From the NCBI RefSeq assembly GCF_964194025.1, contig NC_134478.1, positions 8,866,001 through 8,930,000 on the forward strand: DNA of 64,000 nucleotides. Reading direction: 5' to 3'. Under the pieces are notes generated by a model. The model did not search any database. It was given only the letters and a program-made list of their open reading frames with translations, and was not told the origin of the DNA. The position numbers were made by a program, and so were the translations under genes. This stretch comes from Convolutriloba macropyga (lineage: Eukaryota). Below are positions 9,900 to 54,951 of this stretch, piece after piece. How positions within the stretch are numbered: the stretch's first letter is position 1; every line of letters starts with the position of its first letter.

Positions 9900-10794
9900 C
9901 CCGGGTCGAGGTGTCACCGCCATTCAACGCAAAATTATGTAAGGTAAGCGGTTAATGCGGATATTTTTGTAAGATAAGCGGTGAATGCGGTGAAATTACG
10001 TAAATCAGGCGGTGAATGCGGTGAAAAAAAACTTTATCGGCTGGTAGCGCTGAAATTACATAATTTAACCGCTGAATTTAGCGGTGAAATTACATAAATT
10101 CACCGCTTCGAAAAAAAGTGTCCAAATTATGTAAGATAAGCGGTGAATGCGGTGAAATTACATAAATTCACCGCTCAACTTAGTGGTGAACTTACATAAA
10201 TTCACCTCTTAGAAAAAATTCTTAAAGATGTTTGAGATCAGCAAAGAATGTGGTGAAATTAATGGTGAGTGTGGGAGGAATTGTTAGATTTGCCTTCCCA
10301 CTAAAACTACCCCTTAATCTTACATCTTTTTGACACTTTTTCTAAGCGGTGAGTTTATGTAATTTCACCACTAAAGTAAGCGGTGAACTTACAAAAATTC
10401 ACCACATTTCACCGCTAAAATATGTAATTTCACCGCTAAAAATTGCAAATCTTACAAAAATTCACCGCGCATGTTTTGCAGAAAGTAGAGTGAATTCGAT
10501 TTATATTCAAACAAAAAATAATAGAATTTAGTGAGAGATGGCGCAGTGGAAGAAGAAGTGGAAGACATGCAGGAGGTGAGAGGTTCGGACCCTTGTAAGG
10601 GCGGTGAAATTACATATTTTAGCGGTGAATTGTGGTGAATTTTTGTAAGATCACCGCTTAGTCTAGCGGTGAACTTACATAATTTCACCGCATTCACCGC
10701 ATTTCACCGCAAAATTATGTATGAAATTTGCGGTGAAAAAACTAACTTTTCACCGCTTATCTTACATATTTTTGCATTTTTTTCTCGACCCGGG
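9900..10794. mobile_element. Non-autonomous DNA transposon, CCCGGGTCGAG TIRs, 2-bp TSD (CG), internal GCGGTGAA/TTCACCGC repeats
   Basis: Perfect 11-bp TIR with CG on both sides. The paralogous empty site at 11125-11145 (GAAACGCATGAGAAAT) confirms the boundaries. Confidence 0.92.
10531..10596 (+). promoter_or_regulatory. tRNA-like Pol III A/B-box cassette inside the 9900 MITE
   Basis: A box TGGCGCAGTGG (10539) and B box GGTTCGGACCC (10582). No complete cloverleaf. Confidence 0.6.
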
Positions 10795-13700
10795 CGTGAG
10801 AAATTTTGAAGTGGTTTGGGTGCTGAAGAGTTTTGAAGATTGGAGCAAAGAAATAGTGGCTTTCTATTCATACCACTGTTTTCAAGAGAGCGAGAAATTG
10901 AGATGTAAAAAATTTGTAAGACAGCAAAATCTTTGTTCACGAGAGGCTTTAAATAAACGGGTTATTGCATTTTTGATTTAGAGTTTGATTATGATAATTT
11001 TGATTTGTTGGGGTTGTTTTAGCGAGAAATTTCTCTTAGATGTAAATTCTTTTATTAAGAACGGGAGAGGAGTATTGGAGAAGTGAATTATATCACTTTT
11101 GTTCGAGTGCATTTTGGCGAAGGAAATGAAACGCATGAGAAATTTTGGAGTGGTTTGGGTGCTGAAGAGTTTTGAAGATTGGAGCAAAGAAAGAGTGGCT
11201 TTCTATTCATACCACTGTTTTCAAGAGAGCGAGAAATTGAGATGTAAAAAATTTGTAAGACAGCAAAATCTTTGTTCACGAGAGGCTTTATATAAACGGG
11301 TTTTTGCATTTTTTGATTTAGAGTTTGATTATGATAATGTAGATTGGATGGGGTTGTTTTGATAGTGGTTTGAGGGTTGTGCTTTGAGTTTTAGGCTTTT
11401 TTATATTTCAGTTTTTGTTATAATTCAACAGTGGTTTAAGTAGGCACCAGTTTTTTGAAGGGATTGTTATTTGTTTTCTTCGAAGATGTTGTGGAACTTC
11501 CGGCTAAGTGTTTATTTTTTTTTAAAAAATCGCTCTTTCACGAAGAGTTAAGAATGCCTTGGACTGTTCTTCAAAGTCATTTTTGTTCACGTATTTTAAC
11601 AATTGTTCGTAAATAATGCTGTCAAAAGCCTCTTCAGATGCTAATTTGCTTATTCAATTTTTTTTCAACGGCTAGAATCAGTGAAATTGGCGCATATTTT
11701 GTAGGATCTGATCACGTTATCATAATAAAAATTTGTCTCATTGTTGGTTAGATTTAGTCATTGTGCACGACGTATTGTTGTACAGACTGGTGATGTAAGA
11801 TTTCTAGTACTGAACAAAAATCAACAGATTTTCATAGGAAACAGGTTATTATGTTGTGACAAAACAAATAAAAATTCTTAATTCTGTTTGTTTTATTGAG
11901 GTCTACGAGTCCTTTTTTGTTTTGATGACCAGGAAGGATTTGCATCAAAACTATAAAAAGTTTTGGCATTGTTGCAGTTTTAGAAAGAAGCCCATTTTTG
12001 AGAATTTTACAGAAGTGTTAGAGGAGTTTTCCAAAGTTTGTTCAGTTAATGTAACTACGTAGGAGCTAGAAAGTTTCACATAATTATTCCAACTTTTGAT
12101 AGTGTTCGCAACGTAATAATCGAGTTTTGATTTTGTGTTTGCGCTTTCGCGTGTTGGAGCTACATTTTTCCAAAAAAACAACAACATAGCACAATTTATG
12201 GCGACAGGATCATTTAAAATAGTTGAAAAAATTGTAAAATTGTCAAGGAAACCATCCAAATTCATCTCTTGAAATCCAGGTCACTTTTAACTATTAAAAT
12301 TTTTACTCACGCTTTCTTTGTTTTCTCTGAAACTCACTGTTTTTTTTGTGAGAAATTGGAGATTGCCTATTTAGTTTAAAGCTAAACTTTTGTTAGTGAA
12401 GTTGCTATATATTTCGATGGTAAGCATTGTTGATGTATGTTAAGTGGGCGCATGTTTTGAAGGAGAATCTTTTGTTGATTTTAGGCCAAATTTCTGAAAG
12501 AATGTTTTGAAGCCGTGTTATTTGTTGAGGAAATTACAGCTGAGCATCTAATTTAGTTATCAAATTTTGCACTTTCGGAATTTTTGCATTGTCAGAAATT
12601 GACAAAGGAAGGTGCAAGCACAGACTAATTTGCAAAAAGAGAGACGATTAGAATGAAATTTTTCAGTTTTTGACCAATTACCCATTCAAAGTGTTATTGA
12701 TGATCTCCATCGTCCTTAGAACAATAGAAAGCTGAATAAGTTAACAATCATTCAAAACATAAACAAAACAGTTGATTCTATTCTCAAGTAATTTTTAATC
12801 AGTATTTGTTTGTTCTTATTTTGTTATCAACCATCAAATTTTCATACTTTTGGCAAGATTGTGATTTTCCCCGGACTCTTATGTCACCGTGTTTATCTTT
12901 CCTTCAAACCAAATAATAACAATTGTGAGTTGACGCAATCATGTCACGTTTTTGTTTGCTATAGCAATGCTAACTTGAACTTTTGAAAACGGGTTGTTGA
13001 GATTCTTGACTTTCTTCAATGTATGCGATCATTTCATATTTGCAGGCTCTATCTCTATGAATAAAATGGTTTATTTTTGTCGTTGAAAAATAGAAGTTTG
13101 CATATCACTAAAAATATTTGGATCGAGTTTCAAGATTTCGCTAAAAAATGCATGTTTTTCTGTTCTCATTGAAAATTTAATTTTCAAAATACGTTTCCTT
13201 TGCTGTGCGTCATCGTTGCCGCATTGTTGCAATTTCTCGTAGCGAAAGTATAAAGTTGATTTTTTACAAAATAGAATATTTCATTTGAACAACACTGTAG
13301 TACTTTTTTTGTTATTCCGCACAAGAAAAATCGAGATGACCGGAAAGAGAGGATTTTGACCGGAATGAGCGGATAATCATTGCAAAAAGATACACGCAAG
13401 GAGCGGAATTTTAGCGGAAGAAAGTGCAAGACATGAACGTTTAATTCCTGCCGTTTTGATTCCGTTCACGTTTAAGGGGTTTGAGCGGATTTTGATAAAC
13501 TATCCGCTCAAACAAATTCCGCTCGTTTCTTGCATTTTCCCCGCTCATTCCTCGACTAGTGGAATGAAGTAAATTCTAAAATTTCATCATAAGTTTACTT
13601 CATCTCTTACAAAAATTTGTTCGAATTCAGCAGTAAAAGATGCGTATAAAACATTCACCTAAATCTCTACTTCTTGGTGCAAACTTTACCCTGGCAAATA

Positions 13701-13926
13701 TTATTTGATGTAAAAATTCAACCTATTTAAAGCACCATTTAAAAAACTTAAGATATCAGTCTTGAATTAGATTCTGTAATTTAATCAAGTCGATCAAAGA
13801 TTGATTAAATTGGTTTTCATCAAAGATTATATATCCTTGATTGGAAAATCCCAGGACGAGGTTCGCGGCTCAAGTCATCTCTGTGCAGACCATCCAGACC
13901 AAAATCGGTTCTGATCAGTCAGACTT

Positions 13927-14105
13927 CAGTCGCGCAAATGGGGTGCCAGACCGGCTTTGGTTGCACACTGGAGGTGACAGAATGACTTGAGTTGCGCATC
14001 GGGGTGCCAGAACCGCTTGGGTTGCTCATTTGTGTTGCCAGATGCAATTGAGTCGCGCACTGCGGGTGCCAGCCCCACTTCGGTTGCGCACTGGGGGTAC
14101 CCTGA
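13927..14105 (+). repeat. ~31-bp tandem repeat (GTTGCGCACTGGGGGTGCCAG-like), ~6 diverged copies, inside a TCTGATCAG-repeat element
   Basis: Repeated TTGCGCA...GGTGCCAG core. A degenerate terminus CCCAGGACGAG lies at 13850. Confidence 0.65.
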
Positions 14106-14899
14106 CTGACCCTACCGACCATTCTTTGCAAAAAATTGGGAAGTGCTCCTCAAAAAGCAGTCCCTTGGGGGTTAAGTATCTTTTTTCGGGGGACTGTTCG
14201 TTTTTCGGATGGACCTCTTAGTTCTTAGTAGACGTTCCAGACTCTGGCAAGAGCTCTGTTCAGACTGTCCAGAATACACGACACAACTATACAGACCCTA
14301 GACCTCACCACGCTATGATCAGACTATCCAGACTCTGGACAAGTCTCATATCAGACTGTTCAGACCTTAGGTAGTGCTCTAATCAGATCGTGCAGACTCT
14401 GAATGGGGTCCTGATAAGACTCTCCAGACCGTAGATAGTGCTGCCAGACTCTGTGGAGCGGTCGCAGTTTGCACCCCGTGCGCGACCCAAGTCGCTTTGA
14501 TCAGGTCTGGCTTGAATTGCGCACCTCATCCTGAGTTTTAATGGTGCCCCAGTCTTCGAACGCGAAAGGTAAAAAACCAGCAGATCTTGGGAGGGTAAAG
14601 ATGTCATAACTTTTCTAACCACAATATAGTTGAGTTGTTTTTGAGGAGTACTCTGCAAATTGAAAGCCTCGTTTACATACTCAGTGGGCGAGAGGCCGTT
14701 AGCTTCACCATACTTCTGTAACCCACAACCATAAATAAAGGGCTCTTTTCAAATACAGTTTGTCATATTATCAAAATAATTGACGTTTTTAATTCACAAA
14801 AAAATGTGTAATTTTGAACTTAATCCTTTCTACTGAGGACGGTTTTTTCCTAGAAACAACGAAAACAGCTTAAGAAAATTTTGCCAACTAGGCGTACTA

Positions 14900-15630
14900 C
14901 CCGGGTTGAATTTTTCCGCCCAAAATGATGTAAGAGCGGGGCTGCAATGGGAGGATTTTTTAGGAAAATGCCGCTCAAAACTCTTACGTTTTTTTGGGCT
15001 GCATTGGGCTTCCAAGGGGGGGGGGTAAAATGGTGTAAGAGTGAGGGGGTAAAAGACAAATTAACCCCCCGCTCTTACATTATTTTTAGTCTGCCAAGGG
15101 GGGTAAAATGGTGTAAGAGTGAAGGGTTAAAAGACAAATTAACCCCTCACTCTTACATCTTTTTTGGTCTGCCAAGGGGGGTAAAATAGTGTAAGAGTGA
15201 GGGGGTAAAAGACAAATTAACCCCCCCCCCACTCTTACATCTTTTTTGGTCTGCCAAGGTGGGTAAAACGATGTAAGAGTTGGGGGGTAATTTGTATTTT
15301 ACCCCCTTACTCTTACACCATTTTATCCCCCTTGGAAGCACAATGCAGCCCAAAAAAACGTAAGAGTTTTGAGCTGCATTTTCCTAAAAAATCCTCCCAT
15401 TGCATCCCCACTCTTACGTCATTTTACCCCCCTTGGCAGCCCAACTCTTACATCATTTTACCCCCTCAATATTACCTTGTTTTAGCCCCCATACCGGAAG
15501 AATGCCAGTCTTGAACCCACAACCTCTTTATCCTCAGCTGCGTCGCCTTATCCTCCAGGCCATCGATGCTTGTCCAACTCTTGACGGTCTATATATATAA
15601 ATAATAATTGTTAGAAATGCCCCATCACAA
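14900..15630. mobile_element. Left part of a CCCGGG-type element (GTAAGAG/CTCTTAC repeats) whose right arm runs into satellite
   Basis: Starts CCCGGGTTGA. 14925-15030 is inverted at ~15320-15425. Homologous to 33139-33374. No right CCCGGG terminus was found. Confidence 0.8.
15503..15569 (-). promoter_or_regulatory. tRNA-like A/B-box cassette in the centre of the 14900 element
   Basis: Minus strand reads GCATCGA TGGCCTGGAGGATAAGGCG...GAGGTTGTGGGTTCAAGAC. Confidence 0.55.
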
Positions 15631-17710
15631 CAAATTACCCCCTCACTCTTACATCGTTTTACCCCCCTTGGCAGCCCAACTCTTACATCATTTTACCCCC
15701 TCTGAACAAATTACCCACTCACTCTTACACCATTTTACCCTCCTTGGCAGCCCAACTCTTACATCATATTACCCCCTCTGAACAGATTACCCCCTCACTC
15801 TTACACCATTTTACCCCCCTTGGCAGCCCAACTCTTACCTCATTTTACCCCCTCTGGACAAATTACCCCCTCACTCTTACACAATTTTACCACCCTTGGC
15901 AGCCCAATTCTTAAATCATCTGACCCCCTCTGAACAAGTTATCCCCTCACTCTTACACCATTTTAACGCCCTTGGCAGACAATTCTTACATCATTTTTCC
16001 CCCTCTTAACAAATTACCCCCTCACTCTTACACCATTTAACCTCCTTGGCAGCCCAACTCTTACATAATTTTACCCCCTCTGAACAAATTACCCCTCATT
16101 CTTACACCATTTTACCCCCCTTGGCAGCCCAAATCTTACCTCATTCTACCCCCTCTGGACAAATTAACCCCTCACTCTTACACAATTTTACCCCCTTGGC
16201 AGCCCAATTCGTACATCATTTTACCCCCTCTGAACAAGTTATCCCCTCACTCTTACACCATTTTACCCCCTTGGCAGCCCAACTCTTACATCATTTTACC
16301 CCCTCTGAACAAATTACTCCCTCACTCTTACACCATTTTACCCCCCTTGGCAGCCCAACTCTTACCTCAATTTAACCCCTCTGGACAAATTACCCTCTCA
16401 CTCTTACACAATTTTTCCCCCCTTGGCAGCCCAACTCTTACATCATTTTACCCCCTCTGAACAAATTACCCCCTCACTCTTACACCATTTTACCCCCCTT
16501 GGCAGCCGAACTCTTACATCATTTTACCCCCTCTGAACAAATTAACCCCTCACTCTTACACCTTTTTACCCCCCTTGGCAGCCCAACTCTTACCTCATTT
16601 TACCCCCTCTAGACAAATTACCACCTCACTCTTACACAATTTTACCCCCCTTGGCAGCCCAAATCTTACATCATTTTAACCCCTCTGAACAAATTACCCC
16701 CTCACTCTTACACCATTTTACCCCCCTTGGCAGCCCAACACTTACCTAATTTTAACCCTCTGGACAATTTACCCCCTCACTCTTACACCATTTTACCCCC
16801 AATCGCAGCCCAACTCTTACCTCATTTTACCCCCTCTGGACAAATTACCCCCTCACTCTTACACCATTTTAACCCCCTTGGCAGCCCAATTCCTACATCA
16901 TTTTGCCCCCTCTGAACAAATTACCCCCTCACTCTTACACCATTTTACCCCCCTTGGCAGCCCAACTCTTACATCATTTTATCCCCTCTGAACAATTTAC
17001 CCCCTCACTCTTACAACATTTTACCCCCCTTGGCAGCCCAACTCTTACCTCATTTTACCCCCTCTGGACAAATTACCCCCTCACTCTCACACCATTTTAC
17101 CCCCCTTGGCAGCCCAACTCTTACCTCATTTTACCCCCTCTGGACAAAATACCCCCTCACTCTTACACAATTTTACCCCCTTGGCAGCCCAATTCTTACA
17201 TCATTTTACCCCCTCTGAAAAATTTACCCCCTCACTCTTACACCATTTTACCCCCCTTGGCAGCCCAACACCTACCTCATTTTACCCCTCTGGACAAATT
17301 ACCCCCTCACTCTTACACCATTTTACCCCCCTTGGCAGCCCAACTCTTACCTCATTTTACCCCCTATGAACAAATTACCCCCTCACTCCTACACCATTTT
17401 ACCCCCTTGGCAGCCCAACTCTTACATCATTTTACCCCACGTGAACAAAATACCCCCTCACTCTTACACCATTTTACCCCCCTTGGCAGCCCAATTCTTA
17501 CATCATTTTACCCCCTCTGAACAACATACCCCCTCACTCTTACACCATTTTACCCCCCTTGGCAGCCCAACTCTTACATCATTTTACCCCCTCTGAACAA
17601 ATTACCCCCTCACTCTTACACCATTTTACCCCCCTTGGCAGCCCAACTCTTACCTCATTTTACCCTCTCTGGACAAATTACCCCCTCGCTCTTACACCAT
17701 TTTACCCCCC
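15630..17710 (+). repeat. Satellite A, ~76-bp unit, ~27 copies
   Basis: Unit AAATTACCCCCTCACTCTTACACCATTTTACCCCCCTTGGCAGCCCAACTCTTACATCATTTTACCCCCTCTGAAC. Period 76 (15701, 15777, 15853). Confidence 0.97.
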
Positions 17711-20700
17711 ATTGCAGCCCACTCTTACATGGCAATTTCAGTCAGGGGATGTAATTCCTTAAAAGCCCTCCCATTGAAGCTCATTGCAGCCCACTCTTAC
17801 AGGACAATTTCAGTCAGGGGGGTAATTCCTTAAAAGTCCTCCCATTGCAGCCCATTGCAGCCCACTCTTACATGGCAATTTCAGTCATGGGGGGTAATTC
17901 CTTAATAGTCCTCCCATTGCAGCCCATTTCAGCCCACTCTTACATGACAATTTCAGCCATGGGGGGTAATTCCTGAAAACTCCTCCCATTGCAGCCCATT
18001 GCAGCCCACTCTTATATGGCAATTTAAGTCAGGGGGGTAATTCCTTAAAACTCCTCCCATTGCAGCCCATTGCAGCCCACTCTTACATGACAATTTCAGT
18101 CATGGGGGGTAATTCCTGAAAACTCCTCCCATTGCAGCCCATTGCAGCCCACTCTTACATGGCAATTTCAGTCAGGGGGGTAATTCCTTAAAAGTCCTCC
18201 CATTGTAACCCATTGCAGCCAACTCTTACATGGAAATTTCAGTCAGAGGGTAATTCCTTAAATGTCCTCCCATTGCAGCCCATTGCAGCCCACTCTTACA
18301 TGACAATTTCAGTCATCGTGGTAATTCTTTAAAAGTCCTCCCATTGCAGCCCATTGCAGCCCACTCTTACATGACAATTTCAGTCATGGGGGGTAATTCC
18401 TGAAAACTCCTCCCATTGCAGCCCATTGCAGCCCACTCTTAAATGGCAATTTCAGTCAGGGGTTAATTCCTGAAAAGTCCTCCCATTGCAGCCCATTGCA
18501 GCCCACTCTTACATGACAATTTGAGTCATGGGGGGTAAGTCCTGAAAACTCCTGCCATTGCAGCCCATCGCAGCCCACTCTTACATGGCAATTTAAGTCA
18601 GGGGGGGTAATTCCTTAAAACTCCTGCCATTGCAGCCCATTGCAGCCCACTCTTACATGGCAATTTCAGTCATGGGGGTAATTCCTTAAAAGTCCATCCA
18701 TTGCAGCCCATTGCAGCGCACTCTTACATGACAACTTCAGTCATTGGGGATTATTTCCTGAAAACTCATCCCATTGCAGCCCATTGCAGCCCACTCTTAC
18801 ATGGCAATTTCAGTCAGTGGGGGTAATTCCTTAAAAGTCCTCCCATTGCAGCCCATTGCAGCCAACTGTTACATGGCAATTTCAGTCAGGGGGGTAATTC
18901 CTTAAAAGTCCTTCCATTGCAGCCCATTGCAGCCCACTCATACATGGCAATTTCAGTCATGGGGGTAATTCCTTAAAAGTCCTCCCATTGCAGCCCATTT
19001 CAGCCCACTCTTACATGACAATTTCAGCCATGGGGGGTAATTCCTGAAAACTCCTCCCATTGCAGCCCATTGCAGCCCACTCTTATATGGCAATTTAAGT
19101 CAGGGGTAATTCCTTAAAACTCCTCCCATTGCAGCCCATTGCAGCCCATTCTTACATGGCAATTTCAGTCATGGGGGGTAATTCCTTAAAAGTCCTCCCA
19201 TTGCAGCCCATTGCAGCCCACTCTTACATGACAATTTCAGTCATGGGGGGTAATTCCTGAAAACTCCTCCCATTGCAGCCCATTGCAGCCCACTCTTAAA
19301 CGGTAATTTCAGTCAGGGGGGTAATTCCTGAAAAGTCCTCCCATTGCAGACCATTGCAGCCCACTCTTACATGACAATTTCAGTCATGGGGGGTAAGTCC
19401 TGAAAACTCCTCCCATTGCAGCCCATTGCAGCCCACTCTTACATGACAATTTCAGTCATGGGGGGTAATTCCTTAAAAGTCCTCCCATTGCAGCCCATTG
19501 CAGCCCACTCTTACATGACCATTTCAGTCATGGGGGGTAATTCCTGAAAACTCCTCCCATTGCAGCCCTTTGCAGCCCACTCTTAAATGGCAATTTCAGT
19601 CAGTGGGGGTAATTCCTTAAAACTCCTCCCATTGCAGCCCATTGCAGCCCACTCTTACATGGCAATTTAAGTCAGGGGGGGTAATTCCTTAAAACTCCTG
19701 CCATTGCAGCCCATTGCAGCCCACTCTTACATGGCAATTTCAGTCATGGGGGTAATTCCTTAAAAGTCCATCCATTGCAGCCCATTGCAGCGCACTCTTA
19801 CATGACAACTTCAGTCATTGGGGATTATTTCCTGAAAACTCATCCCATTGCAGCCCATTGCAGCCCACTCTTACATGGCAATTTCAGTCAGTGGGGGTAA
19901 TTCCTTAAAAGTCCTCCCATTGCAGCCCATTGCAGCCAACTGTTACATGGCAATTTCAGTCAGGGGGGTAATTCCTTAAAAGTCCTTCCATTGCAGCCCA
20001 TTGCAGCCCACTCATACATGGCAATTTCAGTCATGGGGGTAATTCCTTAAAAGTCCTCCCATTGCAGCCCATTTCAGCCCACTCTTACATGACAATTTCA
20101 GCCATGGGGGGTAATTCCTGAAAACTCCTCCCATTGCAGCCCATTGCAGCCCACTCTTATATGGCAATTTAAGTCAGGGGTAATTCCTTAAAACTCCTCC
20201 CATTGCAGCCCATTGCAGCCCATTCTTACATGGCAATTTCAGTCATGGGGGGTAATTCCTTAAAAGTCCTCCCATTGCAGCCCATTGCAGCCCACTCTTA
20301 CATGACAATTTCAGTCATGGGGGGTAATTCCTGAAAACTCCTCCCATTGCAGCCCATTGCAGCCCACTCTTAAACGGTAATTTCAGTCAGGGGGGTAATT
20401 CCTGAAAAGTCCTCCCATTGCAGACCATTGCAGCCCACTCTTACATGACAATTTCAGTCATGGGGGGTAAGTCCTGAAAACTCCTCCCATTGCAGCCCAT
20501 TGCAGCCCACTCTTACATGACAATTTCAGTCATGGGGGGTAATTCCTTAAAAGTCCTCCCATTGCAGCCCATTGCAGCCCACTCTTACATGACCATTTCA
20601 GTCATGGGGGGTAATTCCTGAAAACTCCTCCCATTGCAGCCCTTTGCAGCCCACTCTTAAATGGCAATTTCAGTCAGGGGGGGTAATTCCTGAAAATTCT

Positions 20701-21105
20701 TCCCATTGCAGCCCACTCTTACATGGCAATTTCAGTCATGGGGGGTAATTCCTTAAAAGTCCTCCCATTGCAGCCCATTGCAGCCCAGTCTTACATGGCA
20801 ATTTCACCCAAGGGGGATAATTCCTTAAAAGTCCTCCCATTGCAGCCCATTGCAGCCAACTCTTACATGGCAATTTCAGTCAGGGGGGGGGGGGGTAATT
20901 CCTTAAATCCCTCCCATTGCAGCCCATTGCAGCCCACTCTTACATGACAATTTCAGTCATGGGGGGTAATTCCTGAAAACTCCTCCCATTGCAGCCCATT
21001 GCAGCCCACTCTTAAATGGCAATTTCAGTCAGGGGGGTAATTCCTGAAAAGTCCTCCCATTGCAGTCCATTGCAGCCCACTCTTACATGGCAATTTCAGT
21101 CAATT
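17710..21105 (+). repeat. Satellite B, ~71-72-bp unit, ~47 copies, with a 1074-bp higher-order duplication
   Basis: Unit CCATTGCAGCCCATTGCAGCCCACTCTTACATGGCAATTTCAGTCATGGGGGGTAATTCCTTAAAAGTCCTC. Diagnostic variants recur at offset 1074 (18691/19765, 19301/20375, 19517/20591). Confidence 0.97.
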
Positions 21106-22419
21106 TCACTAATATGGCTCAAAGTTTTCGTCATATTTTAAAACAGAAACCCTAAATCTCCACAAAAATGACCGAAATCAACAGAAAACCATAAAACCTG
21201 ATCTCACGATGCAAACAACTAATCGATGATTACGCCAACTTCTTGTGCAAACTGCATTGGTGTTGTTACTTTCTCAGATTGGATCCGTTATAATTATTTC
21301 GCGTTTATATTATAGTTTTTGATTCGAGGAAAAATGCTGTAAAATTGTATTTATGTTTTGGTCTCATCTATCTACAATAGTGATAATTTTTTTTCATAAC
21401 ACTTTTTTCTGCATGAGTGTAATGCGAGAACAAAATACCGCATCCGATGTTCATTGCATTTTGTCCCAACTATTTAACAGAAACAATTTTAAAAAAGCTG
21501 CTAAAAAATTGGACCTTGGCGTAAACATAATGGTGTCAGTGGAAAATTTGTTTGATAGTTTTTAAATACTTGAAACTAAAAGTTGTGAGATTTTAAAGAC
21601 TAAAATTCAACAAGAAAAAATAATTTTTACAGTGAAATGTACATCAAGTTTTCAGCAGCAAAACAAAATTTGCTATGTAAGTTTGTTCCTAACAAAAATA
21701 CTGAAGAACTTCCTTTGGACTTCACAAAAAACTCAAGAGCTTCGTGGGCATGATTTTTTTTCTAAAAATAAAACGTGTACGGTCTCATATCATAGACGAT
21801 GTGCTTAGTCTAAAACGAACTGACCATATTGAAACTTCTGACTGATTTGACGAAGGCAAATATTTGCTTTTGACGAGTGATCTATGGCCTAAGCGTTCAT
21901 AGAAAATGTACTCTTTAAACTGAAACAATAAAACCATAATTCGTAGGAACATTTAATAGCCGACAATTTTTTTTTGAAATTAAAGGAACAAATTCAACTT
22001 ACGGCCTTGAAACACTTGTTTTGGGATTTTCTGACAGTTGCTCAAATGAAATACTTCAACTTTTTTATTATAAAAAATTTTGTGTCGACTTCCACCAAAC
22101 TAGTGTTGTAATGAGGGTTGGAGGTGGATTAGAGTGGATTAGAGGAGGATGGGAATTTGAGGCGATATAATGCTCTTCATCAGAAAAAGGCTTGATTTGA
22201 TATTGATGGTGGAAAAGATAATAAGTATTACATTACGTTGCAATTACCACCCAATTCAATTAAAAGTCGAGCCGATTGGCTCCCTGGAAATTGTTTCAAA
22301 ATCCTAGAACTTTTTTTATAAAATGTTTTTAACCACTGCTCCAACGATTCAGTTCAGAAGTCACATTTTGTTAGGAGCCACTTAAATTGTAAAAATTACT
22401 TCAAAATTTTTCCAATAAA

Positions 22420-23366
22420 CCCGGGTCGAGGCCAAATGGTTATCTTGTAAGAACTTGCAAGTTTCTGGCAGAAACTTACAAGGCGATCCATCGCCTTGCA
22501 AGTTTTTCTTCCAAAAACCTGCAAGTTCTTACAAGTTATCCAATCGACTTGCAAGTTCTTACAAGTTAACCATTCGACTTACAAGGCTCTTACAAGTTAA
22601 CCATTCAACTTACAAGTTACTTACNNNNNNNNNNNNNNNNNNNNNNNNNNNNNNNNNNNNNNNNNNNNNNNNNNNNNNNNNNNNNNNNNNNNNNNNNNNN
22701 NNNNNNNNNNNNNNNNNNNNNNNNNNNNNNNNNNNNNNNNNNNNNNNNNNNNNNNNNNNNNNNNNNNNNNNNNNNNNNNNAAAACGTTGCAAGACAGGAA
22801 TGGAAACGGATGTTTGGAAAAAAAAGAATCAATCTGGAAAAGTGTGAATTAAATTACAAAAAGGGTATGAAAATTAAGGGCCACTAAATAATTTTGAGGA
22901 AATACTGACATATGAATTTGAAAATTCAATCAAAGTCAATATTTTGGCAACATTTTTATAAAAAAGTGATCATGAAGAAGCTAATTGAGATCTACAGTTT
23001 TTTAACGGAATTGCAAAAGGAACTCTCTTGAATTGATAAAATTCAAAAAGTAACCATTTTATCTACTTAGGTCGAATTGTATTATGTTATCCAAACAGAG
23101 CAACTAACTCCCGCGCGCTTTCTACGCAAAATGACTGAATGTTAAATTGAATTAACCAATAAGACTTGTGCTCAACCGGAACGAACTTGCAAGAAACTTA
23201 CAAATTAGCCATTCGCCTTACAAGTTCTTACAAGTTAATCATTCGACTTACAAGTTCTTACAAGTTAACCATCTTTTGCAAGAAACTTGCAAAATCTTAC
23301 AAGTTAACCATCTTTTGCAAGAAACTTGCAAGTTCTTACAAGTTAACCATTCGGTCTCGACCCGGG
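22420..23366. mobile_element. Non-autonomous DNA transposon, ~50-bp TIR starting CCCGGGTCGAG, 2-bp TSD (AA), CTTACAAG/CTTGCAAG subterminal repeats
   Basis: Left end CCCGGGTCGAGGCCAAATGGTTATCTTGTAAGAACTTGCAAG matches the reverse complement of the right end. AA flanks both ends. The element spans an N gap. Confidence 0.88.
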
Positions 23367-24519
23367 AATCCAGAACCATTCGTCCTCTGGGTGGAACTAT
23401 TTTCTCGCATTTTAACCCAAAACAGCCACGTCTAGAATTTTTTTGTCAAAGTGTACTTTGGTACCATGTATTAAACGCGAGGACCTTGGACGATATTTTT
23501 TCTGTCAAATTCTGACATCTTTGGTGTTCGCATATCAAACAAAAAGTGAAACCTAAATGTAAAGTATGTACTTTTGAAAAAAAATGAGCACGATGTTTTA
23601 AGGTGACGCAAGATCACGACCTTTGGGGTGAACAAGGTTGGTTGCCGGTACAACACTTCAGCCCATAAAGATAAGGAAGACAACGATCTTCCCCCAAAAT
23701 GTCAGAATTTCTTTTAAAAATGAATAAATTGCTGTGAATGTGGTGACTCGTTTAAAGAATTGCAATTTTTAGCATGAAACGCGATGAGAGAGGTAAAATG
23801 AAGCTTTCACCGCTACAAAACCCACAAACCGTACAAAAATTAACCGGAAAAAAATCACAGCAAAATTGTTGGCGTTCAATTTTTTCATCGTCTAGGCTTC
23901 AAAATTTTCACTGCTAAAAGCCTGTAACCCTACTGCCACCACTTAAAAAACGATTTCGAACGAAAACAATTGGTGTTTGAAATGAGCCCTGATAAATTTG
24001 GAATTGATATTTGCAGCAGCCTCCACTCTTGTCAAGAGTATACCAGTTGAGCAAAGTGTAGAATGGTTTCAACACTCGGGTGAACTCTTTCTCATCTGTG
24101 CTGTTGGGTGGTCTATCAATTATTGCCAGCAATGATCGAGGGTTACCCATCAAACCCATGAAACAAAAGTAGTCACTGAAACAATTGTTGACTAACTTTT
24201 TATAACTATTTTACAGAACGTACCTGCCTATAGACAAGTGCACGCTATAGATTATATATTGTAAATAGTAGACTATTGCAATCTATTGCAGTTTTCTGCT
24301 TCTCGACAATCGTTAATAGTTTCATATTAGAATCGTTTCAATCCATTATCATGTCTATGCTTCGAAACAGTTGTTTAATACGCACTAACATACGAAGAGA
24401 CAAAGCAAAGTACAGCTATGAAAAACTGACATTGAGATTTCTCTATTGTAATATTTTGCTCTAAGTGATCGAGTTCTTTTGCTTGCCAACTCATAATCAC
24501 AGCACTCATTACGAATATA

Positions 24520-25420
24520 TATTTAATAACAAGGAGCCTCGGTTATGTGCGTTCCCACATTATGTTCTGACCCCGCTCATCTTCATTTTTCACTTGATTG
24601 TCTACCAAATGAGGAAGAGATTTAAAAAGTTACTGTACCGCTCAACACACCATTAAATGAATAAAAACAATATACGTTAGAGGCCCAACCAGAACTGTAA
24701 TTAATGTGACTACCAGAAAAGACAGCGATAAAAATCAAATAATTACAAATATTAATTACGACCAAAACTCGTTGTCCCTTTTTTGAAAACAACTAAATAC
24801 CAAATCAAAATGGCATCAGATAAAACCAAAAAAAAGAAAAAGACCCGGTATATCATAAGGAAAAAAGTATGGTTTTTTTCCTCAATGCAACATATAATAA
24901 TTTGACAAGAAAAGAGCAAAAGGGCAAAAATGAAGAAAACGTTGCTATTTTTTTGAAAAAAAAATTAATGCAAAACTGATTAACAACATTATGTATCAAT
25001 TGAAATCATTGAGAGATGCTTTTATACCTCTAATGAAAGAGGCCTTTCCTTTTCCAGAATATGTCATACGACTACAAAAAGAAGGAAAAATACAAGCAAA
25101 AAATATTCAGCAGAAATACCACGAAAATGGTGTCCCAGCCAATTAAACATTAGGTTGTTCACTAAGAACATTAAACCTTGTTGATAGTTTTGTTTAAATT
25201 GGAAACAGAACCGGCCTTTTTGTGATACTGCGAAAAGGTAACAGAAATCTAAAAAAATGGGCAAGAATCAAGAATATTTAATAAGAACGCGTACTACTAA
25301 GACCATTTCAGGACAATTAACGATATATGAAGAGCAAATTTCAGTTTACAAGACAATGGATGGGACTTGTCTATAGAGAAACTAAGCTACAAATCAACAG
25401 AAATTATATTGGAATAGCTC
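24520..25420 (+). repeat. Ancient dispersed repeat, homologous to ~29745-30610
   Basis: Colinear shared blocks: GACCCCGCTCATC, CCAAATGAG, ATTACGACCAAAA, GCATCAGATAAAACC, CTAAGCTACAAA. Confidence 0.65.
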
Positions 25421-28400
25421 AAAAATCCAGGGTCTTTTTTATAAACAAAAAATTTCAAAGGTCATAACAAATATAAGCGTCAACTAAAAGAAAAGACAGT
25501 TTATTTTGCAACGTAATAGAAAACTAGGTGCGCCTGTTATGATTAAGACTAAGTCATAAGACTGCAAAATAACTCAAAAATTTCATAAACAACTTTACGA
25601 AACCAGAGTGCTTAAACCATTGAAATTATCAGATATTTACCGCAAGAAGATCAAATCATCACTTGTGCCTCCATTGAACATCATAAAATCTGTTTGTAAA
25701 AAAACTATCCCAAAATGACAACAAAGTGTCCATAAACATTGAAAAATATCCAAAAATTAAAAACAATTTAAAAATATTGATTAAATCCTTAGGACATAAG
25801 TCAAAACGAACAGAGAAACTACGGTTTGGTCCAACAGAAAGAAATCAAGATCTATAAATAATCAGGCTAAGCTACGAAAGTAATACGAAAGTAATTATTG
25901 ACAATTTTTTTCCTTTTCAGACTCACATTTTCGAATAAAATTAAATTGAAAGGCAAAATAAAACAATTAGCTATATACAGGTAACATTTATTAAGTTCAT
26001 TTATATATCCGTAGTTGGCCATTAAGTTCTTTTGTTTCCCCAAAATATGGCACAAAACAATAAAAAATAACAACAAAAACAAGGCAAGCTCATAATAAAG
26101 ACTACCAAATTCTGCTAGAGAAGGTAGTCGCTGCCCTTAAAACCATAAGTTATAAAAGCAATAGGTATGTTCAATTGCGTAATTTACGCGCTCTTATTGA
26201 TTGAAATTTTCAAAAATGTGACAATTAATTCGAGAAACATAAAGAGAACATCGCAAATGGGCAAGTATGCATAAAACACACAAAATTTTGTATGAGAACT
26301 CGTAGTACCAAAACCAAGAAGCTGCTATTAAATAAAAAACGCTACAAAGAAAAGTTTGTGTCTTATATGAAAGAAACTTGATCTGTGTATGCTGAGAATA
26401 AGCTAACAGTTGACAGAAATGAGGTTTAAAAAAATGACAACTTAAAAAAATCAATACACTTTTCTCAAAAAAATTTTATTCAATGACATAAGATTAAAAT
26501 CAAATGCATTGCATAGGTTCAATTAAACCTCTTGAAGAAGCCATATGGATCCTTGATTACTGAGAATCAGTGATTAGACTGCAAAAAAAAGACAAATGAA
26601 GGTAAAACACAAGAATGGTCTTAAAGTTTACTAAAACTCTTCGTCAAAAACTATAAAAACGATTAGATTTTCTCTGAAAATAACTATATGTACACTCGGC
26701 TTCATTTTGATAAAAATGGGAACTGTCTTTAATTGAGCCGTGAATTGAAAATTTTGCCAGTAATGTACTTTAAAAGCAATGAAGCAAATCTATTGAAAAT
26801 TAATCCAATGTCTGTGAAGTAGATCACTCGGTAAGTTAATAATTTCATAAATAGAAAAAAAGAAGTTGCTTTTTAATAATTATTGTTATTATATTATTAT
26901 ATTATTTTCTAAAAAACGGCGGAATTTTAAATCTAGAATAATTTTTTAGTTAGCTTAAATTAAACTAGCGTACTTTTGAAGTTTACGGAGTCAGTGTCAG
27001 CGGTTCTTAGGTCTCTACTGCTGGCAAACTGTATTAAAGTGGACCAAAAGAAGCATATTTTGTGCCGTTTTTGATGAAAAATGTTCGAAATGTCAAAAAT
27101 TTTAGCCAAAAAACATCAATCAATCAATTCAGCAACGATCTTCCATCTTTAACGAAAACAAGAAGTCTCTAACATTTAAAATTTTAACATTTTTTTTATT
27201 ATTTTAGCAGAAATTAGCCAAAGTTTGCGAAATTAACGCAAAATATGAATAAAAACTGTCGAATATTCAAAAAGCTTTAAAACTCGATAACTCCCTGTAA
27301 AAAACGAAATGTGAAAGTTTTTTTTTTAAAATCCAATATTCTAGTATCTACTTGCTTTCTAATGATGCCACTTACAACTCTCTACGATGAATATATCGAT
27401 CGGCCAAATGGACTGATAAAAAAAACCTATTTGAGTATAAAGTTCATCCCTCCCGACTGAGGGGGGGGGGGGGGGTCGGAACAAAAACATACATTTCAAA
27501 TTCTCAGCCGTCCTTATATTTAATTTAATTTACACATCGGCCAACGGTTTATACATAACACATTCAATATTTATATAGAGTGTTTGCAGTTCATACTTAC
27601 ATTCTCGGTTCATTTTCTGTTCGTGAGCATTATCTTAATAAAAAAAATTGTACTCAATTTCATAGCAATTACGTTTTTTATAAGATTCGTGTCTAACTTG
27701 TATTCCCAGCAAACATTGCTTTTTCGACTGGCAGCTCCTGAAGACGGGAGAACGAAGGCCGTAGACACCCACGATTCCACGTGTCCTCTCTGGTTGAGAC
27801 ATCAACTTTTGATAAAAGTGCAGCCGCTGATACTGCTTGTTATGAAAATACAAAGCACATCAGACCTAACCGGTCTAAAGAGGTTTTGTTCTAATTCGGC
27901 TCAATCACTAAAATGATTTTTAGGCGAATCCAAGTACATATTTGAGTGGATGAGAAGTTGGGGGGAGGAGGGGTAAAATTATCGAGGAAAACCTTAAAAC
28001 TTGAGGTTCAACAGCCAGTTCAACTCGAGCGAAAGTATTCTTACGAGTCTTTTCCCTATTCATGAAAAATAATTTTTATTATTCTGGTAAAGAACATTCT
28101 ATCAACAATTTTGATCAACCAGTGTCCTCCATTCAAAGCGTCTTTCGGTATTAAGTTCAATGTTCTCACTAGACGACAACTCAAAAGGCTTTTTGAGAAA
28201 AATTTTAAGGTCGACTTTTGAGGATATACAAAAATTCCCTCAGTTGATTTTTATAAAAAAAAAACGGTCAAAAACTGTGAAATGTTCTGAATCAAGAAAT
28301 GGATTCGTTTGGAGATATGAAAACAGAAAGACTTAAGGTAGGTTTTCATGAATCAAGCCATGTTTTACAGACCTTTTATAGGTATTCTAGTTTTCATAAA

Positions 28401-31249
28401 CCTCAGATCTTTAAATAATGTCAAAACGGAGATAAATGGCAATATATTACTCAAAACTATTACAGATTGCTTTAAAGAGTTCTTGCGTATCAACAAAATT
28501 GAAGCTCACTATTTCGCTGCAACATCGCTTTTCTAACTCCTAAGACGACTTGAGTACTTTTTCTTTTTCTTCTTTGTCTGGTTAAATTTTTATCTAAATT
28601 ATCTATTTTTCTGACCCAAGGAAATTGGTGAATCCATTGAATAGGTAAAAATTGGCCCTGGTCGTCAATTTTTTTTATATAAACTTTTTTCACAATTTTT
28701 CAAGGTTAGAGAAGCTTTCTGTTCGATAGTTCACTTTTAAAAAACTTTTGATGAAGTGTTATGCTACTTTTGATCAAAATGCAAAATTTTTTGATCAAAA
28801 TGTGATAAATCAAAGAACTACGGACCATGTGTGGTTAATCAAGGCAATGAAAATGCTCTTTATTGACATAAAAGAATCTTTCTGAGAAAATTTTCGTGGC
28901 ATAAAGCATATAGCCATTTTATAAATAGCAAGAATTTTACGGCTGTGATGAAATGTAAATGAACACTTCTATCCTGGGTGGAAGATTTTTCACAAAAATT
29001 ACAGCGAAAAGAGGGGAAAAAACATTATAAGGTTATTTCTTCCTTAATGAGAGTGAAAGCGCACTAATTTTGAATTTCAAAAATAAGAATAACAAAGCAA
29101 GAATGTAAATAAAAATGAATTGCATATTTGATTATGGAGTTTAAAAATAAGAATATGTATTTTCAGTGCGCTTTAAGGGGTCTAAATTACACTCTTTGAT
29201 CTAACCTCCAAATTTTTTTACACACTTTTTTACCGTTATTCTCATTTTTAATTTTTAAATTTTTAAATTATCTTTTTACCAAGTCTGTTTTAGGTCTTTT
29301 CCAAATCTTTTATGCTCTTATTCGATTTTAGCGAAAATCCTCTGCCACGGAAAAACCTACAAGTAAGATAAGAGAGATAATAAATGATAAATTGTGATTG
29401 ATTGATTGAATTGATTTAATTTTATGGTTGAGAGGACGACACTGTTCGGCATAGAAGATTATAGCACAAAGCGTTTAATAAGATTTTTTAAAAAAGTGTC
29501 CTAATTCCTTATCGCGTATACTCGACTCGCCAAAGCACATCACTTAAAAAGAAAAATTAACAACTGTAATTTTCACAAATTCGAATTAGAAAATCAATTG
29601 TTTTTAAATAAGTTGATATTGTATCCAAAACATTTTTAATGCCGATTTGACCGTAGCAACAAGGTAAAGTGAATAGAGTGACATTTCGCGTGTCTCTTCC
29701 TTCGAAGCCTTTGAAAATTATGACAATTTACAAAGACAAGGAGGCTTGGTAATATGCATTTGCGCATAATATTCCGACCCCGCTCATCCACTTTCTTGAT
29801 TTAATTGGTTCCCAAATGAGAAAGAGATAGAAACATTTATGCAACATACATATCGTTTAAAGAACCGCTAGTGGGATAAAAATAATGCCACGTTGGAGGG
29901 CCGACTAAACCTGATGTTAATATAAAAATCGGATACAAACTTTTGATTACGACCAAAAATCGATGTCTTTATTTAAAAAAATAATGACAAAATCAAACTC
30001 GCATCAGATAAAACCTAAACAAAACAATTTAACCAATACTTCACTAAAAGAGATATGGGAACTGTCTTCAATGCGACAGGGTGACAGGTCGACAAAAAAG
30101 AGCAATTCGGGGCAATGTTAAAATTAACTTTCTAAATTTGAAAGCAATTTATTTCAATTTGATTAAAATAATTAGATGTTATATGAAATCACTAACAAAA
30201 TCATTTATATCTCCATGGGAAGCAATTGAAATGTGTCATTATCCAGTGTACGCCAAAAAAAATGTCAAATAATGACAAACTCTTGAAATTTCATCTAAAC
30301 TTTGCGCGAAAATGGCAGTCAAGCCGTTAAAATCATAGGTTCGTCGCAAAGAACATTAAAAATGATCAATTTTGCAGTATTTCAAAACCAATACAACCTG
30401 CCATTATTTTTATAATTGAAAAAGATAGCAAAATTCCTAATAAATGCACAATTGTATAAAAATCACAAATTTTTATTTGAAATCTCGTAGTAACAGAGCC
30501 GAGAAACAAGTGATTGCAGCAATAGCCCTTATAACAGTCAAATTTTTACTCACTGGATTGTTTTGACCTGTATCCACAAGGGCTAAGCTACAAACCGACC
30601 AAAAAGTGGTCAAAAAATGTTTTGAAAACAAATATTTTCAAAAATCATATTGAACAAAAGATTTCAACAAAAATGAGATGTATTATAACCTCATGCCATT
30701 CATCAAAAACAGATAAAGAACAGAGAAATAAATATTTGAAGGATCAAAAACCTGTGAGACTCCTCATCAAGTTCACTTGGCTATATACTGAAATCTTTAT
30801 TGGGTTCAATTATAAGTCTCGGGGAAGCAATTTAGACCTATTATTACCATTGATATCGTACAACAAACGAAAGAATAAAACACAGGCAAAAAATCCAATA
30901 AATTTTGCTAGAGAACAGTGTCTCAGCCCAAAAAAACATGAACTGTTCAAAAGAAATACGATTAACATATTCATTTCCATGTTGTTTCAACGCTGTGAAT
31001 TTTTTCAATTCTCTATTCCTTCAATTGGGTTTGACAATAATGTGATATTTCGACAAGAATACAAGTGGAACCTATGAATTGTACCTATGAAAGAATATTG
31101 AGTAGGGTGCTACCGTCTGAGCCTATTTGTTTAAGCGAGAATTGATTCTCAACAAAAATGGAAATTCACAGATCGAAGGAAGATCACAAATTTTTAAGTT
31201 ATATGCAAAATTTAATAAAAACTGTTCCTGCTACTTACTATAGCAGCCA

Positions 31250-31800
31250 GTGCAATGTACTTGTTTTTTGATGCCGACATTTGATGAACTAAAGTTATTG
31301 TGATCTGTTGTGACTATTACTAGATCTCGGTCAAAAGTCATCAATTCAAAGCGCATTTCAATTTTTTTATGTTTCCTACAGGCTCAGAGAGTGAGTTTTC
31401 TTTTAAATTCTAGGTTTGTAACGGCTGCTCTCCTATCAAAGTCAAGGGAGAATTTTGCAGCACCCAGTTGGTTTCAGCGGTTTCAAATCTGTCCGGATAT
31501 TGTGTTTTCGCAGTTAACTTTTGTGAACTGGATTATCCGCTATACTGTACATTACCGGTGCATTACTTGTTGCTCAATTAGTCCTGATAACTACTTGTTC
31601 AGCTTTGCTGTATAACAAACTTGTTTCTCTCAGGATAACAAAAAATTCAAATTGAAACATTCATTTTTTTGTTGAGTTTTGGTTAATAACTCAACTTATA
31701 ATTCGAAATTGCAAAATCCCCTATGTCCAGCTCTGGGGCAGTTAATTTCTATATCCGCTGCGTTAATTTTTTCGGAGAGTTCTTCCCGATTATCAAGCTA
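31250..31800 (-). pseudogene. Fossil IS4-superfamily-like DDE transposase
   Basis: Manual translation gives AGHRGFCNFEL (DRGF-like), then AAVTNLEFKRKLTL*ACRKHKKIEMRFELMT (TN...Y-x2-R-x3-E-x6-K spacing, with Y, R and K substituted). Stops and frameshifts are present. Confidence 0.55.
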
Positions 31801-33138
31801 ACAAAAATAACAATATTGGCTTTTTATGCTTTTCAGTACACTCAGTTGCTCATAACGCAATTATTGAACTATGCTAGGATTCGTTAAAGCCAGTAAAAAA
31901 AACTGACTTTAGGCTTTCAACAAAGTTTCTCTTACATAGGAACTTCGTTCCTCAGAAGGAAAGATTGAGAAAATCAAAGTTAATTCGCTTTTCACAAGTC
32001 AAAGTCAAGTTAATTCTGTACAATCACCAATATGATCTACAGAAACAAAACACGATAACAAGCAATTTACCGCTCAAAAAAGTGTGATTCAATACGCACT
32101 GTATGTTAGTTTAAAAACAAACTTAACGAGTTTCAACTGATTTTTGGTAGTTTTTCAAGCTCTATTTATACCGCCGTACATGTCAAAATTGCTTCTCTGA
32201 TTGGTTGTAAATCACTTCAGGTTTGATGATTACGTACTAATAATAGTTACTGAATATAATTGTGGAACAAAGTGAACAAATCCATATGGCTTCGATAAAT
32301 TTAGCTGGTCATTCTATTCTATCTTTACTGCTTGAAATGGCTTTGAAGCGATACTCAATTTGGTTGTTGACTTATTAAGCTCAGCCAGCACAAGGTGATC
32401 ACTTTTCATAACGAGTAATTACCATCTCAAATCTTCTGATCATGGCTGATTGATACCAAAAAATATAAGTCTTGTTTAAAAAGTCAAGACATTGATACTC
32501 TCGGCAAAACGAGGGATGCTTAAACAAGATCGCGTGCAAAGACTTCATACAAAGACTTATACCTTATAGAATATCAATTTTGTTCGAAAAATTGCGAAGA
32601 TGTTATTTGTTTGAAGTGCATATGTTTAATAATATTCTAATAACAAATTGTTCGTAGTGCCAATACCGAACAATAGTAAAAAAAATACGAAGATTGTAAA
32701 AATACAATTGATTACAATGTTCGACACTGCAAAGATGCCATTGAACCTATCTGGTTTGTTTTTGGGGATCTCGCGGAAGAGTTGTCCAATTTTAGCTGTA
32801 AAAAAATGGTAAGGTATGAGATATCAGTTCGAATAGAGGTTAACTGTTGAAAAAAAAGATTTTTGAAAACTATTTTTTAAGGATCAAAAAGATTAGTTAA
32901 TTTGTTGTTTTCTCAAGGATAGATCATATCAACGCCTCAACGAGATATATCAAATCTTGTCTCATTGAGCTTCTGCAATATTTTCGGCAAAATGCATTTG
33001 AATGGCTTCAGAGTCAATTTGCCTTAGAAAAATGTCCGAAAATGTTTAAAGAAGTTTATCATCAGTCGTCTTCAAGAGCTCTGGTAAACTTTAACACTAC
33101 ACCCAAATATTAACAAGCGCGGTTGTACAAAACGACTG

Positions 33139-33374
33139 CCCGGGTCTTACAACAAATTCCACCCATTTTGTTGTAAGAGTGGGGAAGAGGTAGATTGATG
33201 TAAGAGTGAGGGGGTAATTTATCTTTTACCCCCTCACTCGTACATCATTTTAATCCCCTCGACAGGCCATTGAATCCCAAAGAGATTTAGGAGCTTTGAG
33301 CTGCATTTCCTTAAAGAATCCTCCCCTTGCAGCCCCACTCTTACATCTTTTTGGGCGAAAAAAATCGACCCGGG
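33139..33374. mobile_element. Short CCCGGGTC-terminated MITE, 2-bp TSD (TG), same family as the 14900 element
   Basis: TG|CCCGGGTC...GACCCGGG|TG. The reverse complement of its right ~110 bp aligns to 14900-15010. Confidence 0.85.
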
Positions 33375-33468
33375 TGTTTTAATTTAAAAGAGGCCTTGCA
33401 AAAACCCCAAAAGAGTGTAGAGCTTCATAGAAATTTTTTTCTTTTATTTTTTCAGATTAGTCCTAGAA

Positions 33469-33653: not shown

Positions 33654-33759
33654 CTAGAGCAACAAAAAACAGTCAGTCCAGTGTCTGATCAACTAATATT
33701 TGGTCGATGGATAACATAGCTGTAAAATTATACAGCCGCCCACCATTACAGCGGACCCG

Positions 33760-54260: not shown

Positions 54261-54951
54261 ACATTGTCGGAGAGTGCAATTGAAAAAAAAAGGAAATTGT
54301 TGTTTTCGTGACCATATGTTGCATGCGTTTATCAGTTGGTACCGTGACTTGGTAATTATTTTAAAAACACCAAAAATGAGTATGATTGTTTAATCCATGT
54401 TTTATTATTCATTAAAAAGGGGCTAAAAATGTGTTTGTTTTGTCTATTTTACTCTGTGTTCAAGCAGATAAGTAACATATATAAGTAACATATATTACTG
54501 ATCCCAACATCTTGGCCGACATGTTCTGTATCCTAACCATTTCTGGTCTGCCAATAGTCGACCCGACCATATAGGTTCAGTCTACACAAAGTTGTTTCAT
54601 ACCAAATATTGATCGCCCGTAACGAAATCCAAGTTTAAATCAGTACTGGCTCAGTCTAAATCCAACTGCAAGTCAGAACTGATTCAGAGAATCATTCATG
54701 ATCAACTTAGCTTTTGCTTGTTCAACTTTAGACCAGGTTTGATATTAAAGTCGTCAGACTTGATTAAACCTTTTTCAGTACTGACTTACACTTGCAGTTC
54801 GGTTCGGGCAATCAAGATCGCTTCAATCATCTACATTTGAACTAAAGATCTCTTTTCCGTGGCCCAAGGCCATCTGACATACCGGTTTTGGGTCGTCATA
54901 CTTGTCCTGGGCAAAATTAATTTGGTACAGTTATTAAAAAGTTTTACTCAC

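Follow-up and report, generated by a model that had tools for sequence, protein, structure and literature searches.

Miniature transposons with a shared end in Convolutriloba macropyga: probable members of a CMC lineage with a SET-transposase protein

Three short repeated elements, designated W1, W2 and W3, were analyzed in a 64,000-nt stretch of the Convolutriloba macropyga genome (contig NC_134478.1, positions 8,866,001 to 8,930,000; the whole stretch is referred to here as the window) and were found to be real miniature DNA transposons with a 2-bp target-site duplication (TSD). [quoted passage not shown] Their probable mobilizers are members of a lineage of much larger elements which encode a SET-transposase protein. 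Window positions are used for all window features, and C1 and C11 denote contigs of the same 1.18-Gb genome.

Reading of coordinates, ends and flanks bore out the preliminary description of this DNA, which had placed three elements with shared ends and different 2-bp duplications at the positions listed in Table 1. W1 is bounded by CCCGGGTCGAG and CTCGACCCGGG, with a terminal inverted repeat (TIR) of 11 nt (CCCGGGTCGAG), and W2 carries the same 11-mer at each end, within an inverted repeat of approximately 45 nt containing 3 mismatches. W3, which ends in CCCGGGTCTTA and ATCGACCCGGG, has a TIR of 8 nt and holds only CCCGGGTC in common with the W1/W2 end; the longer end match previously reported for the first two elements was also confirmed. 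Together with their relatives these elements have the properties expected of MITEs, being 209-947 bp in length, non-coding, bounded by TIR and TSD, and present in thousands of copies. W1 and W3 contain no open reading frame (ORF) of 130 aa or more. An assembly gap (22625-22780, 156 N) lies within W2. Because both sides of the gap are collinear with the ungapped copy L018 (W2 positions 1-190 match L018 1-190, and W2 362-947 match L018 243-935), this gap is internal to a single element, with which the outer TSD also agrees; since it corresponds to approximately 50 nt in L018 rather than 156, the length given for W2 is approximate. No reading frame is touched by the gap, and the 130-aa frame which spans the run of N is not real.

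A further 19 paired copies of 209-935 bp were fetched from contig C1. Both 11-mers were required to be exact, and conservation of the ends among these copies is therefore by construction, which leaves their TSDs unaffected. A perfect 2-bp TSD (CA, TA, AA, TT, CT, GG or GA) was present in 18 of these 19 copies and, with W1-W3 added, in 21 of 22 elements, with varied sequence. The left flank (80 nt) and right flank (78 nt) of W1 could also be aligned without gaps to a paralogous empty site in the next unit of a local duplication, with 150 of 158 positions identical, provided that exactly one copy of the dinucleotide is retained. At the empty site one CA stands in place of the CG, element and CG of the filled site. 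W1 is thus an insertion which duplicated exactly 2 bp. The consistency of the 2-bp TSD, on which the preliminary description had staked its interpretation, was thus borne out by the tabulated copies and by the empty site. The local duplication of approximately 340 bp (10797-11480) is itself moderately repeated, with a summed contig depth of 2.7-24 x 10^3 at 10900-11299.

The boundaries of W1 were also evident when public contigs from several runs were aligned on window positions 8900-14880. Approximately 200 contigs per run lost similarity exactly at 9900 and approximately 200 exactly at 10794, while summed contig depth was approximately 20-170 on either side of W1 and reached 1.7-2.7 x 10^5 within it, a difference of three to four orders of magnitude. 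Identical W1 edges were observed in a run of a second organism. With respect to abundance, CCCGGGTC occurs at 7 sites in the window against 0.24 expected, a number reached in 0 of 100 shuffles; the seventh site (33754-33761) is without a partner or other resemblance to the family. Across the genome, CCCGGGTCGAG gave 7,992 matches against 76 for its reversed control, CCCAGGTTGAGGT gave 4,802 sites against 11, and the consensus end CCCRGGNYGAGGT gave 14,899 sites against 62. Short pairs of plus and minus sites were seen, from their coordinates only, to mix CpG and decayed forms of the end, for example CCCGGGTTGAGGT with CCCAGGTTGAGGT at a distance of 567 bp.

By all-against-all BLAST, five body types were distinguished among the 22 copies. 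The largest is the GCGGTGAA group, which comprises several subfamilies and 17 copies including W1 (which matches L013 and L017, both of full length, at 93-96% identity); the CTTACAAG type comprises W2 and L018, which belong to the same family, and the remaining three types are represented by one copy each (W3, L006 and L010). Identity among copies of one type was 78-96%, from which it follows that the MITE families are not very young. A different motif array had been claimed for each of the three window elements, and this proved correct, with 21 occurrences of GCGGTGAA in W1, 13 of CTTACAAG in W2 and 3 of GTAAGAG in W3, where fewer than 0.04 were expected in each case and none of 2000 shuffles equalled the observed number. 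W1 also contains 11 copies of TGTAAG/CTTACA, W2 has CTTACAAG / ACTTGCAA arrays in both of its arms, and W3 carries TGTAAGAGTG(A)GGGG motifs. The view of one end on many unrelated bodies was upheld as far as the five distinct body types are concerned, but these are not wholly unrelated, as all carry a TGTAAGA/TCTTACA box which is repeated inside the element. In most copies the first TGTAAGA is met at a distance of 27-39 nt from an end. The box is followed by a type-specific half-site, namely GCGGTGAA, G(C/T)GCTGAAA, ACTTGCAAG or GTG(A)GGGG; GCGCTGAAA and GTGGGG are likewise examples of half-sites. Four body types out of five were enriched in TGTAAGA/TCTTACA, with 7-15 occurrences against 0.1-0.6 expected (0 of 2000 shuffles); enrichment was weak in L010, where TGTAAG occurs twice and 47 of 2000 shuffles reached that number. 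The type-specific half-sites also recur strongly, in the two arms and in either orientation.

From these features the recognizable shared end is bipartite, with the terminal 11-mer followed by a spacer and the TGTAAGA box. By analogy with the subterminal repeats of En/Spm, the subterminal boxes (TGTAAGA core and half-site) are putative protein-binding sites. Since the TGTAAGA box is shared, it is no less likely that the families have one partner in common, or a small number of close relatives, than that each has its own 'lock'. The shared box points to a common reader, and the differing boxes of the autonomous families sampled show that recognition has diversified across the lineage. The center of W1 (10531-10600) contains motifs resembling an A box (GGCGCAGTGG) and a B box (GGTTCGGACCC), but ARAGORN and Rfam detected neither a tRNA nor a known RNA family in 9000-34000.

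One complete giant element was read 27.7 Mb further along the contig of the window (G000:C11:36665901-36690400; L032-L034). This 24.4-kb element has perfect 42-nt TIRs starting CCCAGGTTTAGGTG and subterminal arrays, and contains a 675-aa frame which continues in one of 306 aa, with both a SET domain and a weak match to Transposase_21. When its protein was compared with the genome, more than 3,300 candidate loci were obtained at a first look, and many of the loci scored had open frames of 950-1005 aa with 51-55% identity to it. On C1, two paired CCCAGGTTGAGGT sites separated by 31.8 kb have a transposase copy between them. The transposase-encoding elements are 24-32 kb in length, and they are rich in internal satellites. 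In the giants examined (L032-L034, L035-L054) satellites with units of approximately 162-174 bp lie on both sides of the transposase gene, and extra ORFs are present. In the 24.4-kb element, a conserved domain without a Pfam match is common to two extra ORFs, of 281 aa and 162 aa, and one of these could encode the subterminal-repeat binder.

The protein of approximately 1000 aa consists of an N-terminal SET domain (PF00856) followed by a DDE core. In an alignment of database relatives (A1), NTDGA, ADL, GCxxC, HLLRH and FESAN were invariant, and the core signature, D (NTDGA), D (ADLIAK), C(2)C, H(3)H and E (FESAN), is that of EnSpm, Mirage, Chapaev and Transib (PMC12730594). Among the Pfam models, DUF1258 corresponds to Mirage transposases, Transposase_21 to CACTA and DUF1280 to Chapaev (PMC3985635). 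DUF1258 (PF06869; cut-off 33.1 bits) was the best Pfam match for the transposase core, with scores above cut-off for P0039 (51.2 bits), P0036 (45.2), P0062 (39.9), P0034 (38.2) and P0024 (38), and a score barely over it for P0089 (33.2 bits). Transposase_21 (PF02992; cut-off 28.6 bits) matched P0034 at 42 bits, and no match to the Chapaev model PF06918 was observed among the transposase relatives tested. The transposases of different subfamilies are 35-55% identical to each other, and a profile search with a threshold of E <= 0.001 recovered 11,148 representative proteins, 899 of which had E <= 1e-30; nearly all are without names. The SET part (P0002:1-260 and relatives) was closest to KMT5B/SUV420H (E about 3e-11), which are H4K20 methyltransferases, and as the NHSC and post-SET cysteine motifs are kept, this domain may be catalytically active. 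No solved structure matching the transposase core was found by sequence search, and no report of a SET-CMC transposase was found in the literature.

An inverted-repeat search within 9 kb on either side of ten transposase copies found no TIRs, because the elements exceed 20 kb, and ends were then located by motif. A terminus was present 5.1-7.8 kb past the 3' end of the ORF in seven of ten 20-kb regions around transposase copies, and 3.7-5.9 kb past it on five contigs of the public assembly ERZ25071359, giving 12 sampled copies overall. As its transposases are 94-98% identical to copies from the window's genome, this assembly is from the same or a very close species; it also contains CCCGGGTCGA-type miniature elements (L059:21331-21448). 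The termini of the giants were CCCAGGTTGAGGTG/C, CCCAGGCTGAGGTC, CCCAGGACGAGGTT (P0006 type), CCCAGGATGAAGTC (P0017 type) and CCCGGGGCGAGGTG (P0007 and P0023 types). In the window's genome approximately 26 of the CCCGGGGCGAGGTG sites were located, in the correct orientation, 3-13.5 kb downstream of P0007-type ORFs of 74-98% identity, many of which are open frames of 1017 aa.

It is these termini which link the MITEs to the transposase-bearing elements. Of the 14 positions of the MITE end CCCGGGTCGAGGTG, only 1 is different in the P0007-type end CCCGGGGCGAGGTG; the two CpGs of the MITE end are all that sets it apart from the CCCAGGTTGAGG type, and each variant base of the MITE end occurs in some autonomous family. 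On this evidence the terminal 13-14 nt of the two classes of element are homologous. For assignment of a non-autonomous to an autonomous family, the Repbase rule is equal TSD length and no more than one mismatch over terminal positions 1-11 (PMC4455052). On the second of these points, CCCGGGTCGAG and the P0007-type CCCGGGGCGAG have one mismatch over positions 1-11. Mobilization of the MITEs by this SET-transposase lineage is what we infer from the likeness of the ends.

The preliminary description had proposed a set of non-autonomous CMC-like families, and this proposal was supported by the transposase with the CMC motif, by the DUF1258 matches and by the similar ends of the encoding elements. 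The motif and the Pfam matches are those of putative autonomous relatives, the MITEs themselves being non-coding. The 2-bp TSD of the MITEs lies within the CMC range (2-5 bp, and 2-3 bp in most clades), and 2-bp TSDs have been described in CMC elements before (PMC6004678).

Several observations weigh against the assignment. CMC termini are usually 5'-CAC...GTG-3' (5'-CA...TG-3' in most cases), and all the ends read here begin with CCC (CCC...GGG). The abundant subfamilies P0002 and P0006 scored only 13-22 bits, below the cut-offs of both DUF1258 and Transposase_21, and for this reason their CMC membership rests on close relatives and motifs. The 24.4-kb element, the sole complete giant read, is flanked by TA/AA and has no clean 2-bp TSD. 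A search for long copies encoding a transposase had been suggested, and giants with similar ends were indeed found, but none had the exact CCCGGGTCGAG end and none had TGTAAGA arrays. TGTAAGA clusters were confined to MITEs among all the sequence fetched; clusters beside a P0009 ORF were considered as subterminal arrays and rejected, as they proved to be internal satellite. Three long pairs of plus and minus CCCGGGTCGAG sites on C1 (8.8-13.3 kb), considered as autonomous copies, had mismatched flanks and no transposase ORF. Finally, no second TIR was located for the P0007-type elements within 14-24 kb upstream, CCCGGGGCGAG not being that end, and a walk upstream on public contigs met approximately 14 kb of satellite and then host genes.

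In the mechanism we propose, a DDE transposase supplied in trans would cut at the conserved CCC terminal motif (consensus CCCRGGNYGAGGT), and the element would be rejoined at a staggered 2-bp cut, repair of which would leave the 2-bp duplication, as in the general mechanism of DDE transposons. The enzyme would most likely be supplied by the 24-32-kb autonomous elements with their KMT5-like SET-DDE protein, and the subterminal boxes may be bound by the transposase itself or by the product of an accessory ORF of the giants. In its fullest form, which we put forward tentatively and at rather less than even odds, the MITEs would be a small part of an undescribed and still intact Mirage-like branch, characterized by an H4K20-type SET fusion, satellite-seeding copies of 24-32 kb, many subfamilies, and approximately 15,000 ends which combine one cleavage motif with changing boxes. 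We regard it as a serious contender, though also somewhat short of an even chance, that the lineage is the same but without any 'lock and key', so that one or a few near-identical transposases would read the 11-mer and TGTAAGA, and the type-specific motifs would be passengers or products of arm amplification. The enrichment of TGTAAGA in four of five body types, mostly at 27-39 nt from the end, is consistent with such a common reader, and arms do amplify, as the subterminal unit of the element at 14900 has grown to kilobases of satellite. It does not readily account for half-sites so strongly repeated in both arms and both orientations, the enrichment in L010 is weak, and each of the autonomous families sampled has a different subterminal motif, which indicates that diversification does occur across the lineage.

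It is improbable that the MITEs derive from another superfamily with 2-bp TSDs (PIF/Harbinger-ISL2EU-Spy) and that the resemblance of ends is coincidental. Harbinger relatives can make TSDs of 0, 2 or 3 bp (PMC12730594), and no autonomous copy with the exact MITE end was found. A 13/14 match to a transposase-linked terminus is, however, very unlikely by chance, and a genome search with PF13359 (DDE_Tnp_4), shallow and with a model which ISL2EU may escape, gave 4 matches, all on small contigs which look foreign to the host and with no matching terminus at their edges. Nor is any transposase-like frame visible at 30900-33140. A candidate IS4-like fossil at 31250-32470 was dropped, as non-rigorous inspection revealed no transposase-like open segment. 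Intact Harbinger-type (DDE_Tnp_4) transposases were observed at L026-L029 (contigs C941, C1304, C4615 and C759); their translations appear G+C-rich in comparison with the AT-rich host, and they may come from a symbiont or contaminant. That the elements are not mobile at all, and represent either an artefact of cloning or adaptors or else a palindromic repeat which recombination has spread, is scarcely credible. CCCGGG and TCGA are indeed palindromes, CCCGGG is a SmaI site, and the TIR strings were found in the literature only in primers and polylinkers. Variable 2-bp direct duplications, the precision of the empty site and the exact boundaries of copies dispersed in their thousands argue against such an origin, as does the presence of the elements in runs from independent samples and a second organism; the artefact reading is refuted by the empty site together with the TSD table.

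Table 1. Elements and element remnants of the family in the window
Feature	Position	Strand	Description
W1	9900-10794 (9898..10796 with TSD)	.	MITE, 895 bp, TSD CG/CG
W2	22420-23366 (22418..23368 with TSD)	.	MITE, ~947 bp, TSD AA/AA
W3	33139-33374 (33137..33376 with TSD)	.	MITE, 236 bp, TSD TG/TG
Paralogous empty site for W1	11058..11215	+	Next unit of ~340-bp local duplication
W3-family end CCCGGGTTGAATTTTTCCGCCC...	14900..21105	+	Same family as W3 right end; no second terminus seen
Decayed non-autonomous element	13850..14535	.	686 bp, ends CCCAGGACGAGGTT / CTCAGGATGAGGTG, flanks AT/TT
Decayed relative	61049..61528	.	480 bp, ends CCCGGACCGAGG / CCTGGGCCGAGG, flanks AT/TT
Solitary end CCCGGGGTGAGGTGGTCGAAAC	63554..63598	-	Like TIR of P0007-type autonomous family
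Solitary decayed end CCCAGGACAAGTATGACGACCC	54867..54911	-	

Further relatives of the family are present in the window (Table 1). Five degenerate relatives had been listed in the preliminary description, and those at 14900 and 13850 were confirmed; the remaining three (61049, 54911 and 5745) are plausible decayed ends, but without a clean TSD. The TIRs of the element at 13850-14535 are of the type found in the P0006 transposase family. The interior of the element at 14900 passes into a 76-bp satellite (15629-17730, 27.8 copies) and a 72-bp satellite (17708-21102, 47.5 copies). These satellites (15629-21102) are built from the subterminal unit of the element, and represent a transposon arm amplified to 5.5 kb. 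Elsewhere in the window, a 183-aa open frame at 36305-36856 on the minus strand resembles part of the reverse transcriptase of a non-LTR retrotransposon.

MITE families which share ends but differ inside are ordinary, and the interest of these elements lies in the lineage behind them. Approximately 15,000 ends, along with transposase loci numbering in the thousands, become assignable to one lineage with a testable enzyme. As the cleavage end is constant and the subterminal boxes vary, the families form a natural series in which end recognition could be tested against arm binding in CMC transposases. The SET-transposase fusion, found in multi-copy elements with open frames, raises the question of how a histone methyltransferase might serve a transposon; should the SET domain work on the chromatin of its own element, or where the element integrates, it would be a chromatin writer encoded by a transposon and carried inside an active element. 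The window also captures the birth of a satellite, with a transposon arm growing to kilobases of satellite DNA.

When set beside described members of the CMC group, the lineage departs from them in its CCC termini, in the fusion of SET domain and transposase, and in its giant satellite-rich autonomous copies. The Mirage clade (PF06869) is closest, with DUF1258 as best match, a short (2-bp) TSD, short TIRs and subterminal arrays in common; the present elements differ in their CCC...GGG ends, N-terminal KMT5-like SET domain, autonomous elements of 24-32 kb and long internal satellites, and their main subfamilies fall below the Pfam cut-offs. Plant En/Spm (CACTA) elements likewise have a short terminal motif, subterminal repeats in both arms and deletion derivatives sharing only the ends, and Transposase_21 (PF02992) gives a weaker but real match here; they differ in their 3-bp TSD, their CACTA termini and the binding of their repeats by a separate protein, TNPA. 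The CMC MITEs ENS1_Cis of Ciona and CMC-NA_1/2 (PMC6004678), compared by description only, are also non-autonomous, have 2-bp TSDs and were assigned to the superfamily through similarity of their TIRs, but they keep CAC/GTG termini. Oomycete HarbingerS and MuDR elements with SET genes (cited in PMC12730594) combine a SET methyltransferase with a DNA transposase, in other superfamilies. SETMAR is itself a fusion of SET domain and transposase, but it is a domesticated single-copy host gene derived from another superfamily, whereas the fusion described here resides within multi-copy elements with intact reading frames.

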